From assembly GCA_023515725.1 (NCBI GenBank), contig JALDTO010000208.1:840534-904533 (forward strand): a stretch of 64,000 bases of DNA, written 5' to 3'. The translations under genes and the position numbers were made by a program. The stretch is from Amoeboaphelidium protococcarum X5. Its lineage: Eukaryota > Fungi > Aphelidiomycota. Positions 4,510 to 37,554 of the stretch are shown in pieces. The notes beneath the pieces were generated by a model, which saw nothing but the letters and a program-made list of their open reading frames with translations, did no database searches and was not told the origin of the DNA. The first letter of the stretch is position 1, and every line of letters begins with the position of its first letter.

Positions 4510-4789
4510 TTATTAGTAGAATTTTGGTCAATTCTAAACAGAAAGAATTAGTACAAAAGACTAAATTTTTAGAAATATTTAAAGCACCTCCTTAACTGAA
4601 ATAGATGTGTGTGATTGGAGCACAATTTAGTCACCTTTGGTAAAGCCATAATAACACGCTCGGAACTTCAGCTACCTACCACAAGATTTTCGTTTCAGGA
4701 ACTGTCAAAATTCCGCAAAATATCTTTATAGAGAGAAGCAAGGATTATAGTGTAAATATCAAGTATGTCTTTGTATCTGACTCTTTTAA

Positions 4790-7525
4790 AACAAATAAAA
4801 CGCTTGTTTTCTTTTGCACCGGTAGTGTTTTGCACCTTGCACCCGGAGAAACGCACCGAACTCGCTTTGTTACAATCTCGACCGTCTCGCATGTCTGGCA
4901 GGAAGCGTTCTAGAGCAGTGTAGAGTGACTCGTAGCCATCTGGAGGGGGTATCACCACCTCCAACAGTAGTACTGGCATCCCAGCCGTTGATGAGTGTGC
5001 TGGTGTTGGCAGTAGTGTCGGCGTATCCGCCTCCTCAAGTTCTGGTCTGGCTGGGTGCGAGGCTGAAACAAGTGTTGTTAGCATGAATCAAACTGCTGAT
5101 ATCACTTCACAAAGTTCTGCTCAAGTCAGTGCTGCTTTCAATAGGTAGCTGGAGAATGAAGATGAAGATGACGACGACGATTACGACTCTGATGATGGTC
5201 TGGATGATGAGCAGTTGGCGAAGAAGGTGAAGAGACGCAAGAAGTCGGAGAACAGCCATGTGTATCGCATTGAAGCGGCGTACAAGTATAAGCTGGATGA
5301 AGGCATTGGAGAGACGTTGAAGCTGCTGAGGTTGACTCGATCCGACGTATCTGTGCCACTCACTGGCGGTAGGCCTTTGGCTGTGAATAGTATGTAAGCC
5401 TACTAGAAGCATTACAGAGGATTGCGGTACTTTTTTGCGCTAATTGGTGACTACAGCTCGAGTTTAATGCTGCTTCCTAACCCCCCGCAGTACACACCGT
5501 CAATGAACGCCAAGAGCATCATTTTGTTTATCAAGTTCAAGCGTAATGAGAAGGGTTCTTTGCTAAAAGACGAGAATGGCAACGCTGTGAAATGTGTCTA
5601 TGGGCACGATATCAAGTGCTAGGGTGGTTGGAATATGCCACAGAATGTTGACCAGTTGTTATCGGCTGTCTCTGTGCTGCATGATAGTCGTAATTAGAGG
5701 GGGGAGTACAGAGATATCTGCGAAGAGTGCATCCAACGTTCTGAGCGTGGTGATAGATCTGGCTGTCGGTTCCATCCGATGGCTCCTCGTATTTGGCTGG
5801 GTGGAGATCCAAAGAATTCTTCCCTCATGACTAACATGTAGAGATTGAACTCCCGCGATGGATGCAGCTACGTGTCCGAAGGCAGCTAGCCGCTCACACC
5901 TTGGGAATTACTACGTCTCCGCGAGTATTTCATCTCGAAAAATGATGCGAAGTCATTCATGATGTGGACGATGATTATCGTTAGTATCAAGCTATTTCTG
6001 CGCAATGATGAAGTCACCGATTTGAAAATTCATGATCCTAGGCTGGAAAATTGTCTCAACAAGGATCTTGCGACCTTTCAAAGTGATGGCAGTATATCTT
6101 CCCTTGCTTTCTACATTAAAGGCAAGTCTGATCGTGTTAGAGTGTGCTTGACTCTTTGGACGGATTATGATGTGCCCGAATTGTGCCCGGTTCGTGCGCT
6201 TTTGACGTGGATTTTTATTTCTGGGATTAGAACTGGATTCTTGTTCCCTCAAGAGAGTACACTGGATGCTGTGAAGCAAGTTGGGCATGCGGCGTACAAC
6301 ATCTCTTACGTATCTTATCATAGGCAGTATCAGAAAGCTTGTAAGATTGCTACCGGCAATCCCGATGGTAAATTTGGTACGCACACTAGTAGGAAGACTG
6401 GCTATTTGCTTGCTGTTTGGGGAATGGGATCAGAGATTGACATCACTAAGAGTGCGCGACACGCTTCGTCCGCTAATGCCGCATTGTATAAGAAGGATGC
6501 TAGCTATTTGCTAGAATTAGCGAAGACTAGACGTTTGGACGTGTCTTCCGTGGTAAGCAAATTCAGATCAGCCTACTGTGAGTAGCTATAGATGGCTCGC
6601 AGTCTGAATGCTGCCCATTCTAGAGGCAATTTTTGTCTGCAGCAGGTGAGTCAAGAGATTGTTCGTAGCTTATGTGGATTATCTGATGTTGATGCAGTTG
6701 GTGGACCTAGAGTGATTTACGATGCACTTCTCCAGTTGCAGAAGAAAGAGACTGTGCTGCAGCTTATTGAGGCAAAGTTGAAAGAAATTGCACCTAATGC
6801 CACTCCGGAGGAGATTAATGAGCTGCGTAGGATGCTTGAGCTTTATGCGAATGGATTGATTGCTGCCACTCAATCAGCTAAGTTGAAGTAGCCAAAATCT
6901 ACTCTGACTTCTCAATAATCTTCTTCCAGATAGTTACGTGAACAAGCTGCGGTTCACTCTGATGATGAACTCTATGAATCCGATGAAGAAGACACTGACG
7001 TAGCTGATGTTGTACCTGCCATCACAGCTGTTCAGTAGGATGAAGTTGTGAATGATATGCCTGGGAGAGAGAAAGTGAGAAAAGCGAAGACTGCCATGGC
7101 GAAGTTGGAGGCCATTCTTGCAGTGGATGATCCTGGCTCAACCGTCGGGTTATCAGCTGGCGCCAAATCATTCTACGTGAAGCAATACTGCCCGATCATG
7201 AAATGTCTGAGAAAGCACTTTGGCGGTGATTTGGATAAGTTCATCGCACATTGGGGGAACTTCAAACCAACTAGCTTCAAGACAAACAATTGCTCTGGTA
7301 CCATGGATGAGTGTAGTATTTGAACAAGACAGATAATATGGAGACTGAGATTGAAAGTGGATTTAATACAAAAAGTTTAATGCAAAATCATTGAGGATTT
7401 GTTTGAAACAACTGACTTGTCTGTTTTCTGCGAGATCACCGTCGCGCGCTCGATCGCTCGCGCATTCTTCCAACGTCAACCTTAACGGTTTCCGTTTTTG
7501 CACTTTGCACTTTTAACAATAAGAG
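4790..7525 (+). mobile_element. Putative Crypton-like tyrosine-recombinase DNA transposon (ends approximate)
   Basis: A single YR gene is bracketed by near-identical direct repeats TTTTGCACCTTGCAC (4828-4842) and TTTTGCACTTTGCAC (7496-7510), with an extra TTTTGCAC at 4812. No RT, gag or DDE transposase. Confidence 0.65.
4891..7323 (+). CDS. Tyrosine recombinase (phage-integrase fold), 810 aa, intronless
   Basis: One frame from ATG 4891 to TGA with ~15 TAG/TAA read as Gln. Catalytic set: LFLR(6001)NDEV, KGKSD, CPVRAL, GTH(6382)TSRKTG, ARH(6460)ASSANAALY(6487). A CEEC..GCRFH putative Zn site lies upstream. Confidence 0.88.
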
Positions 7526-7974
7526 CATTATACCGTGATGTCATTTTGATTGTATGCCTTGAAGGATCGAATCCCTCAGCCATGGCAATATATCCGAAAC
7601 TGATAGGCTTGAGCATTATAATTTAATTAAAAATTGCCTACAAAGTAAAAAAGAATAAATTTGTGATGTCTTATCTATAATGACGTGATCAAGTTAAGGT
7701 AAGGGGGTGAGACTGACACGTGTGTACGCCATATCATATAAAAAATTTGAAGCATTCGAACTTTTAATTGCGATTTACTTTACTTATTAGCATTCCTCCA
7801 CAATTTAGTCCAAATAATGCTAGTTCTGCAATTAAGGATATCTTACATGTGCGGCAATTCCCAAACGTTAGTCCTTGAAACAATGAGCAATGATATACAT
7901 TTACGCTAATGTACGCTGGTCCTTTTATAATCATGTCAAGTTAAACTTCAAGCATACAACTTCTTGTACCTTAA

Positions 7975-28362: not shown

Positions 28363-29643
28363 TCATACTAGCATCTGCATCAGACCAGTAATACCGACAG
28401 CGCCCAAAGCACCCATTGCGTACTTGTTAGCTCCAGTAGCACCTCCATCGGTTGCCTTTAACTCAAGCTGACCACCATAAGACTTGGAAGCCACACCGGT
28501 GCGGACAAACTTTACAGACAATGGCTTCATACACTTACCAGGAGCCTTTGTGGATCCATCGCCAACATTGGTGCTATTAGAACCAGAGGTGCCATTGGTG
28601 GTAGTATTGGTGGAGTTGCTCATGTCCTTCAAACCGCGCTTTACCAAATACGATCCATTGTTGACTGGAGCCTTAGTAGGGTGAACAGGAGCCTTTGATG
28701 TAGCAGTGGAGTTGATAGGATGAGTAACATTGCTGCCACCATAAGATCCATTCTTCACATCCTTATTACCATAATCACCTCCCTTATCACCATGAGAGTA
28801 TCCAGAGTCTTCTGAGCACTTGTCCATCATGGTACACAGCTCAGGCTGATCACCAGTGACAGCACCAACCATCTCTCCCTTACAGCCGTAATCAGAGTAG
28901 AAGGCGAGAGTGAACGCGTCAGTCTGAGTAGATGGGTTAGCAATTGGATCAGCACCAGGGAAGGCAACATTCTTCACACTGCTAACATGTACTCCACTGA
29001 GGCCACGACATTCGTCAAAGGTACCATCAACCCAGTGCTTGATTCCCTTGTAATCAGCCTCTTCAAACAACACGGCGGACCACTGCTTAGAAGCAGGCAC
29101 AGCAGGTGCAGAAGGCTTCTCAAACCAACAGTCAGAGGTTGGAGGAGCAGGAGCTACAGGGTGCTAAACCGGTGCAGGAGTATAGTTGCCAGCTGGTGGT
29201 TAAGGTACGTAAGGAGCTGGAGTTGATACATTAACAGCAGGAGCTGGATGTGTAGGAGCAGGTACATGAGGAGCTGGGGCAGGTTGTGCAGGAGCAGGAG
29301 CGATTGGACATGGGACACTAGTCGCATTCAAAGGTACAACGCGACACGAGCGATGCAAGTACTTATCACCAATGGTACCAGGCTTCTCGACAACATGCTT
29401 CTCACCAGCACAGCCAAAATCGTAGTAAAACTCCATCTTGTACTGGTTGTGATCAAACTCAGCCTTTTCATACTTCTTCTCACCCATGGAGAAGCAGCCG
29501 GTATAAGTGTTTGCGCTACTGTAATCCATGCGGATTTTACGCGGAGGATGAGAGTCAGTCTTCTTAGGGATCAGCGTGCAGTCTTCAGCATTAGCAAAGG
29601 CAGCGAGAGTAACGAGGGCAGATACGACAGATAAGTATTTCAT
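28363..29643 (-). CDS. Secreted Pro/Ala-rich, probably GPI-anchored surface protein with Cys-containing, crystallin-like modules
   Basis: Signal peptide MKYLSVVSALVTLAAFANA; PAP repeats; VLFEEADYKG..C..VSSVK; hydrophobic C-terminus. The two supplied ORFs join when TAR=Gln (426 aa). Confidence 0.75.
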
Positions 29644-30141
29644 TTTAATTTTCGTGTTAGATTAGATTAATTTCAAAAACCAGAGGTATTGATTATAAGA
29701 AAAGAAAAAGTAGAAAGACTCCATCCATCCAAAGACGTTAAACACAATCTTGATCGAAATGTGTACCAATCCCCCATCGGCTAATCAGCGTATAGTTAAA
29801 GTGCTACCAAAGTCGCGTGATTCCAGGATTTTGAAGGCTTCTGTTACACTTAATATCGGTGGTAGCCAATAAAAAAAGGCAGGCACGTTACACCAGCACA
29901 CCAGAATTTGACTTTGTACGAGGTCTTATGACGGCTGTTGGAGGAAGATAGCAAAATGCACCATGTAAATACCAAATCTTGGAGATAGGCCATAATCACC
30001 ATGAACATTGTGGTAATCTCGTGCAGCATTGCTGTCATAACGATTTGAAGAACCAAAAACAATTGCGGTGCAGCCAGATCATGTATGACGTTACATTCTC
30101 CAATAGTTACCGTATTTACAGCCACAATGAAATTTGTATAG

Positions 30142-30412
30142 GTAATTGCACTCGTCAGAGTGCGATTGCCGGAAAATTCCATTGTTGCGCCACCTTTTTC
30201 TGAAACAACAATGACACGAACGAAGTGAGTGTTGTTGTTGTCAATTATATTGCACGAACGAAGTGAGGGTAATTAGAACAATGTAATTTCACGAGCTTGT
30301 GAGGGATATTACATTCAGCAAATTAATACGAATGTGTGAGTATTAATTGAACTTAATGCGCAACAATGATTTTGATTTTCCGCTATCGCACATCTTCTGA
30401 CAGTGCAATTAC
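30142..30412. mobile_element. Non-coding MITE-like foldback element with ~50-bp imperfect TIRs and four internal hairpins
   Basis: 30142-30190 aligns to the reverse complement of 30358-30412 (GTAATTGCACT..GTCAGA..GTGCGAT..GGAAAAT..CATTGTTGCGC). Hairpins at 30206-30240, 30249-30273, 30280-30315 and 30321-30348. Confidence 0.75.
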
Positions 30413-31933
30413 GAGTTAATTGCAGACTCAATGGCGTGTAAAATGCACACGGAATTTTGAAGGGAATGGAAACATTGTTTTGAATTTAATTATGTCAACC
30501 TGTAAAGGATTATGTTAATAGTTCCCTAGATTGCATGCTTATCCATCGCCCTGAAGTTTGATTGACGCGACTTGTCTCCACTTTATTCATCATCTACCAT
30601 TACTTCCCTTTACTAAACACAGCAATGCAATATACATAGCTCGAATTTCTAAAATTATGTGCTAAGTAGAATAAATAACAAAAAGTCTCAACGTATTGAA
30701 GTATCTGGTGAAGGTACTCAGCGCTATAATGATTAGGTTTCTCTTGGCCATCATTCAGACGATTATGATTGAAATACTGCAACCGAATCTATCTGACAAA
30801 AGTCTCTATATACGTTAGATTTATCACATCGTTACTTTACCCAAATCTGTAAGTCGGAGACAGATAAAGAGCAGGTGTCTGTTGAGGACGCGTTTGCAAT
30901 CTCCAAAGCATTATGTGCATCGTATTATTACTTCATCATTATACAGCGATTTTCTAAAATCCTGCTGCTAGAGGGACGTAAACGAAATCAGAAATACAGT
31001 ATGTTGTGTCCTAGAATGTCTATGGAACTTCTGCTAACATTAACAGCACATTCACGTCACATTATACTTTATACAGCAATTTTATATTAAGGGGATGAAT
31101 AACATCATGAAACAAGGCGCGTACATTTCAAAGAGGAATGAATAACTAAATCCTTGGACTAATCCTGATCTGTAAATCTTAGATGTCTAGTTTATAAATG
31201 TCTTCGAACTGGCTCTTCTTTTTACTCATATTGTTATAAAATGCTTCATGAAGAAAGAAGAGTTAAAGAGTATCTTCAACATCAAGTTCGTTTCAGATTA
31301 GAGATGTCGTTTCAGAGTCAACTATCCGTTTCAGAAAAGAGTGGAATTCACGAAAAATTCTCGTGCATTTTACACGCGAGAATGCAATTATAATATGAAG
31401 TTACCGGAGTTACTTTGCAAACACTTTCTTACACTGATGTTGCGTGAGAGCACTTAAGCTGATGTTGCTCCATAAATTAAAGAAGTAAACCCCTTATTGC
31501 TCACGTAAATAATATTCTATTGAAGATTAGTTTGACTCTGTCAATACCGATGTTTCAGCTTGATCACTCAATTCACTCAGCTAGATTCTAACTCCAATCC
31601 AGGCGGGACGTAAATCGGCGGATACAGTGGCTCTACTTGAAATTTTTCTGCATAAATCTTTATCAACTAAAATCTCAACTTTAATACTTCTTTAAGTCGC
31701 GTGTATGCATCATTGACATTCTCTAATGTTAAACGCACAATAGAATTTGCCCAATAATCACTATTGTTCATAGTTTACCAGTCATTCGCTCCGCGTGTCG
31801 GTCGATTCTTCATCATCAGTCTCAAACGAAAATCTTGTAAAGTGCGCGCCAATAAAGTCGCTTCGTCGCTTCTTCCCTTTGATAGAGTGAAAAAAGACAA
31901 GATCTTATAAACGAACCACAATAATATCACGAA

Positions 31934-32509
31934 ATGATTAGGAATTTAACACGAACGCGCTAATTAGTGACGAGAGTAAGAGTTGGCGTTAGATTTGCAT
32001 CTCAGGCTTCTGCTACAGCACAGAAAGTACCCGTGACTGAAGACGCTCTGAAGCCGGCATCACTTGAGAGTCCTCCATCAGAACGCGTTCAGGATATTGC
32101 ATCATAGATTACGCGTCTTTCACTCCTGGAGACTAGTCAGTTGGTCGCAGTGCTCAAATCATAATTGGGAATCACTGATGCAATGATGGCTGTCCCTGCG
32201 GCTGGATCAGCGAATGTGTAATAACAAGCTGGTGCTGCAGCCTCAGGCGGTGATGCTGATTAGAAGGCTGCCTAACCAGAAGCTCCAAAGAAGACTAAAT
32301 TCTCGCTGAAATTGGTCAAGATTGATGCTGCGCAAAAGGCCAAAGTCATCAGGGAGATTAAGAATTTGATTCCGAATATCAATCTGGTGGAGGCCAAGAA
32401 GTTTGTCGAGTCGGCACCTAAAGTTGTACGTGAAAATATTAGCAAAGAAGATTGCGATAAGATCAAGGCCGCCTTGGAAGCTGTTGGTGCCACTGTTGAG
32501 GTTGAGTGA
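31934..32509 (+). CDS. MRPL12: Mitochondrial ribosomal protein bL12m (L7/L12)
   Basis: Presequence, LSLLETSQLV, KAKVIREIKNLIPNINLVEAKKFVESAPKVV. Confidence 0.93.
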
Positions 32510-36248: not shown

Positions 36249-37554
36249 AACATGTTATGGATATGGTATAAACTTTAGATTATGTCTACAGTATGTGCGT
36301 GCGTGTGTCTGTGTATTAATTGGTATTTTAAATAGACTGAAATTGAATATCAACATGGCCAGTGATTATTTTTCTGCATTACACTCTTGAGCCTGCCGCA
36401 CTCATGTACATCGTTCATAAATCCATGAGCAGTGTCAGTCTATTAGTTTTTTATCCAGCGGATTGCAGAACTATTCATCGAAATAACTTTGATTTTCGCA
36501 TGTATCTTTACGCGTCTCAGTCCCATGAGAGCCACCGCAGATACTGTTAATTAGGCCTAGATTTCCTCTTTGACAAAGTGCATGGCACCGTGGGGCCATG
36601 CTTGAGCTTTGGATTTATCCAAAGTACATTTATTTGTCGTAAAAAGCTGCATAAAGAGTGAAACTAGTTTTAATTTAAATGGGGCAGCATATACAACTGC
36701 AAGAGTGAATGATGTACTAAAGAGGTGTAGAAATGTGAAATCTGGCGTTGAACTTAAAACTGTAATAGCTGTGGGTGTATCGTATTGATAATTTCAACTT
36801 ATCGTATCCCAAACGCTTAAGTCGATGGAACGGGTGTCTTTACATTGCAATGTACTCTTCACAGCCAGAAAATTGTACCTTTACATCTAAATATTCAATC
36901 GATAGCGTCTGTTGTGAATCTATATTCAAAATTAATTTTCCGATACATGTCTATGATGTATGGTTATCTTGTGTTAAACATAAAGGCGAATCCGCCTTGA
37001 ATGATCAGCGAACGGAGTTTGATCCTGATTTGCATAAGCTCGTTATTCTAGCTTAAATTTAGCGGCTACTGTTTAGCGAAAGCTCTATACGCATTTCAAG
37101 CAGTCGTCGCTCTTCTCATTCATATACGAGTTGAAACTATTGTAAATATGCTTGGTTGTTATAACTCATATCCACTACTCTTTTTAACTTAATCTTAACA
37201 GCTACAATATATATTGCGTAAGTGCCAAGAGAAGTTGACTCTAGTTGAAGTGACATTCGGTGCCATAACGAGCCCTCAACTTATGCTGTATTCCGTTACT
37301 GGATTGATCAACTACGCCACATCAAATTGACAGGATCTGACACGCGAGGAAAAAGAACATTTTATGGGCCTCAGGGAAAGGTCCGCGATCTAACCTCGTG
37401 GTTTGTGTTAACAGACATCCTTAATTCTTCGTAGTACTTTGGATAAATCCAAAGAACAATCAGCCGAAACATCACGATTTCGCTTATACTGTGAAAAATC
37501 AATTTGGTAACCGCAATAAATAACAATTAATAAATTGATCTATATATTCCCATG

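Follow-up and report, generated by a model that had tools for sequence, protein, structure and literature searches.

What kind of sequence builds four evenly spaced hairpins that share a loop and differ in their stems? The question is raised by a non-coding segment in the genome of Amoeboaphelidium protococcarum X5 (GCA_023515725.1; 23.6 Mb, 346 contigs), in a 64,000-nt stretch of contig JALDTO010000208.1 (positions 840,534 to 904,533, forward strand) that is called here the window. An earlier note on this DNA had described a self-contained foldback MITE of about 270 bp at 30142-30412 and proposed that it is the non-autonomous partner of a tyrosine-recombinase element or, failing that, a structured non-coding RNA. 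The results below favour another assignment: the segment is most likely part of a non-autonomous rolling-circle element of the Helitron2/HINE type, one with an unusually long, hairpin-rich 5' module.

Genes were read with TGA as the sole stop codon. With the standard code, open reading frames are short and Hsp70, cofilin and EF-Tu-type domains show up piecewise. Much of the window has a homeolog on contig C264, about 91-92% identical. The segment sits between a gene at 29002-29784 (minus strand) and one at 31883-32506 (plus strand), the latter of which we take, judging its translation by eye, to be mitochondrial L7/L12.

Four phased hairpins enclosed in a foldback

The array spans positions 30206-30348 of the plus strand and has a period of 37-38 nt. 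It comprises hairpins H1 (30206-30240, 12 of 12 stem positions paired), H2 (30249-30273, 6 of 7), H3 (30280-30315, 11 of 13) and H4 (30321-30348, 9 of 9). The four stems are unrelated to each other in sequence, whereas the loops are conserved, reading CGAACGAAGTGAG (twice), CGAGCTTGTGAG and CGAATGTGTGAG, with loop starts spaced 38, 37 and 37 nt apart. This arrangement, already described in the earlier note, was confirmed by direct reading and by repeat finding; Tandem Repeats Finder reported no repeats in the array because the stems differ between units. The inverted arms of about 50 bp hold up equally well: an inverted copy of the left end at 30358-30412 (plus strand) pairs with 30142-30190 through 45 long-range pairs and closes the foldback. 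So does the hairpin GGTAATTGCACTC/GAGTGCGATTGCC at 30141-30170 (plus strand), a palindromic subterminal inverted repeat of 13 pairs, 2 of them T.G, which lies 5 nt from the 5' end of the element defined below. A further small hairpin, GAGT-TAATTGCA-GACTC, at 30413-30429 (plus strand), contains a third TAATTGCA.

RNA folding of the module yielded -97.8 kcal/mol for the plus strand (z of -6.5 against shuffles) and -90.6 kcal/mol for the minus strand (z of -8.8), and DNA parameters yielded -58.8 versus -55.0 for the two strands. On the plus strand the stems contain 7 G.T and 0 A.C mismatches. By our own calculation, such a 7:0 division would arise with a two-sided probability near 0.016 if transitions hit either arm at random. 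The G.T pairs that had been described as strand-specific are thus indeed confined to the plus strand; however, both strands fold beyond chance and the plus strand does so only somewhat better, so that the strand preference is real but modest. To judge from the stems, the bias points to a fold that would form in the single-stranded state.

The hairpins occupy the left end of a 1,255-bp insertion

The limits of the inserted unit were set by empty sites. Three other samples, one from the same organism, one from a second organism and one a biofilm metagenome, each yielded a contig that matches the element's flanks at about 94-97% identity. In all three contigs 30135 is followed immediately by 31391, so that 1,255 bases are missing, and the two sides of the joint have no letter in common. 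The unit therefore runs exactly from 30136 to 31390 (plus strand; GTATAGG...GCAATTA), limits that also agree with the alignment of copies. The homeolog on C264 lacks the segment as well and reads ...CAAAATTT|TAATATGAAG...; the empty-site sequence is GAAATTT|TAATATG, with the insertion between two T's. No target-site duplication is present at the 30135/31391 joint in the three samples or against the C264 homeolog. Under the TGA-only code no credible open reading frame was found inside 30136-31390.

Homology among copies likewise extends from 30127-30136 to 31389-31396 and does not end at 30412. What had been reported as a foldback is the left 277 bp (30136-30412) of a longer element, and no stand-alone 277-bp copy exists in the assembly. 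The earlier note was right in seeing part of a non-autonomous mobile element; the self-contained MITE at 30142-30412 has to be given up.

The sequences at the two termini are GTATAGGTAATTGCAC (one end) and GAATGCAATTA (other end). The left flank, ATTT at 30132-30135 (plus strand), resembles the element's own 3' end, ATTA. Left flanks in four copies read ATTT, ATAT, ATTT and ATTT, and in one metagenome contig GTTA; the base to the right of the element is T or C across copies. The check for copies and empty sites that had been suggested thus returned several copies and precise empty sites. Since there is no fixed-length duplication, the DDE superfamilies are excluded, and with them a TIR MITE of a DDE transposon.

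The right end has its own set of repeats, all on the plus strand. Three direct CGTTTCAGA iterons, 19 nt apart, lie at 31289-31335 (other copies have two), and an inverted copy of this right-end iteron, CTTTTTCTGAAAC, stands at the left end (30193-30206); the single occurrence of TCTGAAAC in the window falls within it. A 3' subterminal inverted repeat, GAGTGGAATTCAC, at 31339-31351, is 39 nt from the 3' end. By direct reading it matches the reverse complement of the 5' repeat at 10 of 13 positions; we estimate that a match this good would turn up by chance in a 50-nt window with a probability of about 0.006. It is followed by a 7-bp palindrome, TCTCGTG-CATTTTACA-CGCGAGA (31359-31381), 9 nt from the 3' end, and by the terminal TGCAATTA (31383-31390), which repeats the 8-mer TAATTGCA of 30143-30150 perfectly in inverted form. 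The left end has its best inverted counterpart at 30358-30412, about 980 nt rather than 40 nt from the 3' end.

Both ends are conserved among copies with diverged interiors

Besides the window copy, full copies were found on contigs C214, C212 and C249, the last interrupted by a 5'-truncated LINE-like insert with a 15-17-bp duplication. Contig C264 carries a 5'-truncated copy with an intact 3' end, C146 a diverged left end (74% identical), and two further loci match only the first 19-45 nt of the element. A search of metagenome contigs did not recover the left-end 24-mer. A KDZ/Zisupton-like transposase (1,384 aa, Ulp1-like tail) located 2 kb from the C146 copy is a separate element, since the homeolog shows host sequence and another repeat in between. 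On a further contig, C157:21381-21432 holds two CGAACGTAGTGAG, 39 nt apart.

When the window copy was compared with those of C214, C212 and C249, identity between subfamilies was 97-100% over 30136-30208, 98-99% over the hairpin array (90% for C249, owing to an inverted loop), 97.5-100% over 30351-30430 and 97-100% over 31281-31390, as against 72-78% in the interior (30531-30900). Given this difference, the left module and the right end look like required cis sequences. The pattern is as expected if only the ends are needed, in which case the needed left end would measure about 295 bp and include the hairpins. Alternatively, the ends could owe their conservation to recent exchange of end modules between elements. 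If the Helitron2-type assignment set out below holds, the element is a compact natural example of what such an element has to retain for its mobility: conservation covers about 295 bp at the left, hairpin array included, and about 110 bp at the right, with the interior left to drift.

Individual copies decay freely, as judged from two of them. The C212 copy has a fifth unit, a hybrid of the H2 5' arm and the H1 3' arm that cannot pair; in the C249 copy loop 4 is inverted, from CGAATGTGTGAG to CTCACACATTCG. Strand switching inside a hairpin is known to invert loops in this way. The five copies showed no significant covariation, because four of them are near-identical: a single compensatory pair was observed and 117 of 500 shuffles equalled that.

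The distribution of one short repeat suggests another history. TAATTGCA or its complement occurs at 30143, 30404 (minus), 30417 and 31383 (minus), bounding two nested units, so that the element could be a composite of two older ones, the 277-bp foldback (30136-30412) and a unit at 30413-31390 bounded by TAATTGCAGACTC and GAGAATGCAATTA, which travel, or once travelled, jointly. Sequence depth in another strain is compatible with this, being about 10x that of the flank over 30144-30291 and near single copy over 30514-30809 (these are summed contig depths, not copy numbers), as are interior relatives without the left module (loci L014, L016 and L017) and the composites with multiple 5' ends described for Helitron2 (PMC5148889). 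However, the assembly has no foldback copy standing by itself and both parts leave as one piece at the empty sites, which makes a composite origin unlikely.

Layout and insertion signature resemble those of Helitron2/HINE elements

Helitron2, Helentron-HINE and DINE-1 elements insert without target modification, at TT or TTTT|T/C. They have asymmetric terminal inverted repeats, hairpins at both ends and often central tandem repeats; their palindromic subterminal repeats, 12-15 bp long, are set in by 2-4 nt at the 5' end and by 38-60 nt at the 3' end, where a palindrome of 5-10 bp stands 8-35 nt from the terminus (PMC5148889, PMC4067079). The 1,255-bp element shares with them insertion without duplication into a T-rich target (T|T or T|C), a palindrome near the 3' end, terminal hairpins on both sides, a block of tandem repeats in the place of the central ones (here the hairpin array), the lack of coding capacity, and 5'-truncated and chimeric copies; its palindromic subterminal repeats correspond in part. 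It differs in that its ends are GT...TA, that the 5' repeat is 5 nt rather than 2-4 nt from the end, that the 3' subterminal repeat matches at just 10 of 13 positions, that the strongest inverted copy of the left end is internal, giving rise to the 277-bp foldback, and that the central repeats are hairpins with a conserved cap. The layout reads 5' to 3' on the plus strand, which is also the strand that carries the G.T bias and that an enzyme of the rolling-circle type would displace; such a bias suits the single-stranded intermediate that has been put forward for Helitron2-type elements. We conclude that 30136-30412 is probably the 5' cis-acting module of a non-autonomous Helitron2/Helentron-HINE transposon of 1,255 bp.

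This membership rests on the layout and the insertion signature, not on a partner. An autonomous Rep-helicase element with matching ends was not found among the 346 contigs of the assembly, from which a partner could be missing. In the assembly the end 19-mers and 18-mers of the element are confined to non-coding copies, and none of the copies with these ends is longer than the element. Helitron_like_N and PIF1 loci occur elsewhere with other ends, and comparison of the element's ends with three Helitron loci returned chance 8-10-mers only. Contigs of public runs showed neither a circle junction of the element nor copies of it in head-to-tail tandem. A cluster of ATGCAATTAT on contig C314 falls in apparent coding sequence. 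A canonical Helitron (Helitron1) was rejected, as the element ends GT...TA and is flanked by T and T, versus TC...CTRR between A and T; the end sequences of the canonical Helitron on contig C179 are unrelated to those of the element.

The genome has a resident Helitron2 (C207:35815-43314), which shows up as an insertion when compared with its homeolog and lies inside a 1.19-kb repeat. It codes for DUF6570 and Helitron_like_N and for a helicase that has a Walker A motif. Its 5' end consists of TC followed by the palindrome CTTTGGATTTATCCAAAG; on its 3' side an inverted copy of this palindrome, about 35 nt from the end, precedes a second palindrome, GCATGGC...GCCATGC, and the terminus ACTTTGT. 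A non-autonomous copy lies in the window at 36573-37455 (minus strand). The flanks read ...TTGT|element|T or C. The 1,255-bp element resembles this Helitron2 in the order of its parts and in a left flank that mimics its own 3' end (TTGT| there, ATTW| here), a mimicry which, from HUH chemistry, would be expected if one nicking enzyme cut after one short word at both junctions. The two have unrelated end sequences, and the resident Helitron2 starts with TC.

From these features we infer how the element may move. A Rep-helicase of the HUH class, supplied in trans, would nick the plus strand behind ATTT on the left and, where the element ends, behind ATTA on the right, peel off this strand as single-stranded DNA and paste it between two T's of a T-rich target without duplication. 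On the displaced plus strand the terminal palindromes and the four central hairpins would fold, and the array would likely be either a module recognised by its structure or a signal for priming the second strand, in the manner of rolling-circle single-strand origins.

The tyrosine-recombinase element has different ends and junctions

The element to which the hairpins had been tied lies at 4771-7532 of the window. It is Crypton-like, has at least 21 identical copies, and its recombinase gene is one frame of 810 aa that includes 15 in-frame TAA/TAG codons under the TGA-only reading. TTGCAC occurs three times at its left end and twice at its right, always in one orientation, and neither end has hairpins. 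Among 19 copies, the left junction shows a constant (T)TGTATC with TA seven nt upstream, and the right junction GAGCA followed by TTNTA. In one homeolog comparison TTNTA proved to belong to the target, where it mimics the TTGTA start of the recombinase element. Only the right boundary could be fixed at an empty site, because the two flanks of the copy tested have homeologs on different contigs.

Were the hairpin element a non-autonomous partner of this recombinase, it would move through a circular intermediate, perhaps as folded single strands as in the case of integron integrases. Insertion without duplication fits conservative recombination, and the recombinase is abundant, with an intact frame of 810 aa in an element of at least 21 identical copies. 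Both elements begin (T)GTAT and end in GCA(A)TT.TA-like sequences, and a circle junction, AATTA|GTATA, would agree with the target, AATTT|TAATA, at 7 of 10 positions by direct reading. Neither of the two shows a target-site duplication, which for the recombinase element is known from flank comparison only. TTGCAC, too, occurs in the hairpin element, at 30146, 30250 and 30403 (minus). However, these three occurrences compare with 0.8 expected from the window background of 0.625 per kb, and two of them belong to one inverted repeat, so that the motif is near chance; moreover, it is inverted here and arrayed directly in the recombinase element. The latter also differs in its TTNTA target and its 810-aa frame, and has neither terminal hairpins nor inverted repeats. 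Its junction signature (TTGTA on the left, TTNTA on the right, TA 7 nt upstream) appears at none of the hairpin element's junctions. The recombinase copies are 100% identical versus 72-98% for the hairpin element, which implies that their periods of activity differ. No copy of the hairpin element in the assembly contains the recombinase gene. A partnership with the recombinase is thus quite improbable, and assignment to Helitron2/HINE corrects a tempting, unsupported tie to a very active element of the same genome.

Loops H1 and H2 resemble an exceptionally stable DNA mini-hairpin

The H1 and H2 loops read CGA-AC-GAA-GT-GAG, in which the central A-C-GAA-G-T amounts to two pairs (A-T and C-G) around GAA; written as a DNA mini-hairpin, this cap is d(CACGAACGAAGTGAGTG). 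Between CGA and GAG a C-G pair and tandem G.A/A.G pairs are possible. Tandem sheared G.A pairs in DNA are favoured by a 5'-YGAR-3' context. The two loops may thus be read as a C-GAA-G mini-hairpin seated on potential tandem sheared G.A pairs. H3 and H4, shorter by one base, do not match a GNA triloop; the old copy on C146 fits in part. Mini-hairpins of the d(GCGAAGC) family are exceptionally stable, resist SSB and are found at priming sites of single-stranded phage and plasmid DNA (PMC13037366). Resemblance to this family lies in the C-GAA-G, the flanking A-T pair and the position between CGA and GAG, whereas the mini-stem is A-C/G-T instead of G-C/G-C, and H3 and H4 misfit. Given the letters of the loop and the d(GCGAAGC) precedent, the array is read here as a structure that the plus strand would adopt as single-stranded DNA.

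The same features were weighed for an RNA. The hairpins might encode structured small RNAs (K-loop-like and bound by L7Ae-family proteins, or other processed tandem RNAs), the transposon being only their carrier. Stems compatible with G.U on one strand only, GA...GA beside the loops and the high conservation of the left module would all suit such RNAs. However, of the features of a K-turn or K-loop the hairpins have the GA...GA letters alone, and the conservation covers the whole left module, including terminal repeats needed for movement. In Rfam scans of the hairpin region and of the whole window, at gathering and at permissive thresholds, no family covered the hairpins, and a C-G-closed GNA triloop favours DNA over RNA (PMC13037366, PMC3201870). 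Arrays of the motif in prokaryotes (see below) lie in either orientation relative to flanking genes. We therefore regard the structured RNA that the earlier note had offered as its second choice as very unlikely, and retain the single-stranded-DNA reading in what follows.

The loop cap recurs in prokaryotic arrays

Metagenome contigs and prokaryotic genomes were scanned for two exact copies of ACGAACGAAGTGAG 18-30 nt apart. Matches were obtained in 30 metagenome contigs and at 25 loci in species-representative prokaryotic genomes; a rough estimate, and no more than an estimate, puts the number expected by chance at 0.3-3 arrays per 14-mer. According to record titles the hosts include Haloplanus, Halorubrum, Altarchaeum, Acidobacteriaceae, Paludibacter, Draconibacterium and other Bacteroidales, as well as Clostridia/Eubacteriales, Pirellulaceae (Planctomycetes), Hydrogenedentota, Saccharibacteria and Calditrichia. 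G+C content spans 27 to 66%. Nearly all arrays are intergenic, an open reading frame spanning the array in 1 of the 30 metagenome contigs. They are single-stranded in orientation, adopt either orientation with respect to neighbouring genes, and in several cases are close to tRNA genes.

In these arrays the 13-mer caps stems that are specific to a lineage, such as GGCGGCGCA...TGCGCCGGCC in haloarchaea, GGCTGGGGA...CCCCCAGC in Pirellulaceae and AAGAATAACA...TGTTATT in Clostridia. At 55 loci, pairing among the eight flanking positions amounts to 4.36 Watson-Crick pairs, versus 2.60 +/- 0.15 with permuted partners (maximum 3.02 in 200 trials). Within arrays the mini-stem covaries, AC..GT alternating with GC..GC, and the loops read GAA, ATA, GTA or AAA; the letters of these variants, like those of H1 and H2, suit a GNA triloop. 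A single genome of the Acidobacteriaceae contains 21 copies, dispersed over at least 13 loci, where the reversed control gave no match. Among 400 sampled Bacteroidota genomes, on the other hand, the single 15-mer occurs in 7 versus 8 for the reversed control, which indicates that the motif is sporadic, not general. Viral contigs yielded no loop array, nor did the reversed control. At 24 prokaryotic loci no Rfam family covered the arrays at gathering or permissive thresholds, no recurrent transposase stands beside the arrays, and the loop 14-mer string was not found in the literature searched. In capping hairpins whose stems vary by lineage and which form tandem intergenic arrays in bacteria and archaea, the motif is reminiscent of REP/BIME sequences. 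REPs, however, are defined by a GTAG head and a RAYT gene, neither of which was seen here.

This recurrence is most simply read as convergence on a fold of great stability, the alternative being a shared function or transfer. It is conceivable, if still doubtful, that CACGA-[AC-GAA-GT]-GAG is a self-contained single-stranded-DNA module which arose or spread repeatedly in the three domains and marks DNA that passes through a single-stranded state. If so, the cap would be a priming or recognition signal, or else a structure that drives its own tandem expansion. We consider this recurrence across domains, which could point to a general signal of single-stranded DNA, the part most worth following up. 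Among the neighbouring genes of the arrays only one syntenic locus, in Bacteroidales, recurs, in which a kinase gene, a gene for a 23S-rRNA-IVS four-helix protein, the array and a nucleotidyl transferase gene follow one another.

Changes in one copy of the hairpin element and occurrence of its cap elsewhere

The copy of the hairpin element on contig C249 of the genome assembly (G000) has undergone two changes. At window position ~30209 it carries an insert of ~700 bp (L013, G000:C249:844816-845500), containing a CCHC-knuckle-like reading frame and flanked by a duplication of 15-17 bp (CTTTTTCTGAAACA); the insert looks like a 5'-truncated non-LTR retrotransposon. The second change affects hairpin 4, the last of the four hairpins in the left module. 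At the equivalent of window positions 30330-30339 in the same copy (L013), the loop is inverted from CGAATGTGTGAG to CTCACACATTCG on an unaltered stem, a small inversion mediated by the hairpin.

The assembly also contains CGAACGTAGTGAG twice, 39 nt apart, at C157:21381-21432, and one more exact loop 13-mer at C249:591099-591111, none of them within a known copy of the element. Both sites may be further carriers of the hairpin cap, the conserved loop motif. Hairpins capped by CGAACGAAGTGAG (variants CGAGCGAAGCGAG and CGAGCATAGCGAG) also form intergenic tandem arrays with periods of 21-44 nt in prokaryotic metagenome and genome contigs (L056-L110), spread over many bacterial and archaeal phyla and interspersed with GCGAAGC and GCCGAAGGC mini-hairpins. 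At five Bacteroidales loci, the array comes after a gene for a 23S-rRNA-intervening-sequence (four-helix-bundle) protein.

Other mobile elements in the window and the genome

A tyrosine-recombinase element resembling Cryptons spans 2,762 bp at window positions 4771-7532 (+ strand). Its 810-aa recombinase ORF (4891-7323, +) is read with TGA as sole stop, with 15 TAA/TAG codons in frame. At least 21 copies are present at 100% identity, and many contigs terminate within the element. The left junction is an invariant (T)TGTATC, with a TA situated 7 nt upstream; at the right junction, GAGCA is followed by the target TTNTA.

Two kinds of Helitron were found. At window positions 36573-37455 (- strand) lies a non-autonomous member of a Helitron2 family whose 5' end is palindromic. 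Family members begin with TC and the palindrome CTTTGGATTTATCCAAAG, and end with an inverted copy of this palindrome, a second palindrome and ACTTTGT. An autonomous relative, a 7.5-kb Rep-helicase element (G000:C207:35815-43314; L052:2016-9515), is nested in a 1.19-kb repeat present in at least 15 copies. The canonical Helitron on C179 is single-copy and encodes a 1,490-aa protein with Rep and a PIF1-type helicase; its terminus (L047:3140-3183; G000:C179:641740-641783) is formed by a hairpin of G and C alone, CCGCGCGCGCACGCGCGCGCGG, and then CAGCCTTG|T. The final 42 nt of this Helitron recur, inverted, on C154, 216 bp downstream of a Fanzor zinc-ribbon match.

Matches to Cas12f1-like_TNB (TnpB/Fanzor) number 36 in the assembly (e.g., C154:219328-219489 and C212:696724-696873), and include a family of ~12 members lying 2.1-2.5 kb from a 415-bp repeat. 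One match sits 530 bp past the right end of the C212 hairpin-element copy, in convergent orientation; others occur near recombinase-element copies.

On C146, a 1,384-aa frame read in the same TGA-only code (L025:2604-6755; G000:C146:659603-663754, - strand) displays, on visual inspection, a CxC zinc cluster, a DGNFKL/KDZ-type transposase core and an Ulp1-like C-terminal protease motif; judged by eye from these motifs, the predicted protein would be Zisupton/KDZ-like. The 415-bp multi-copy repeat lies on one side of the frame, and on the other side, 7 kb further on, a Fanzor-type zinc-ribbon match.
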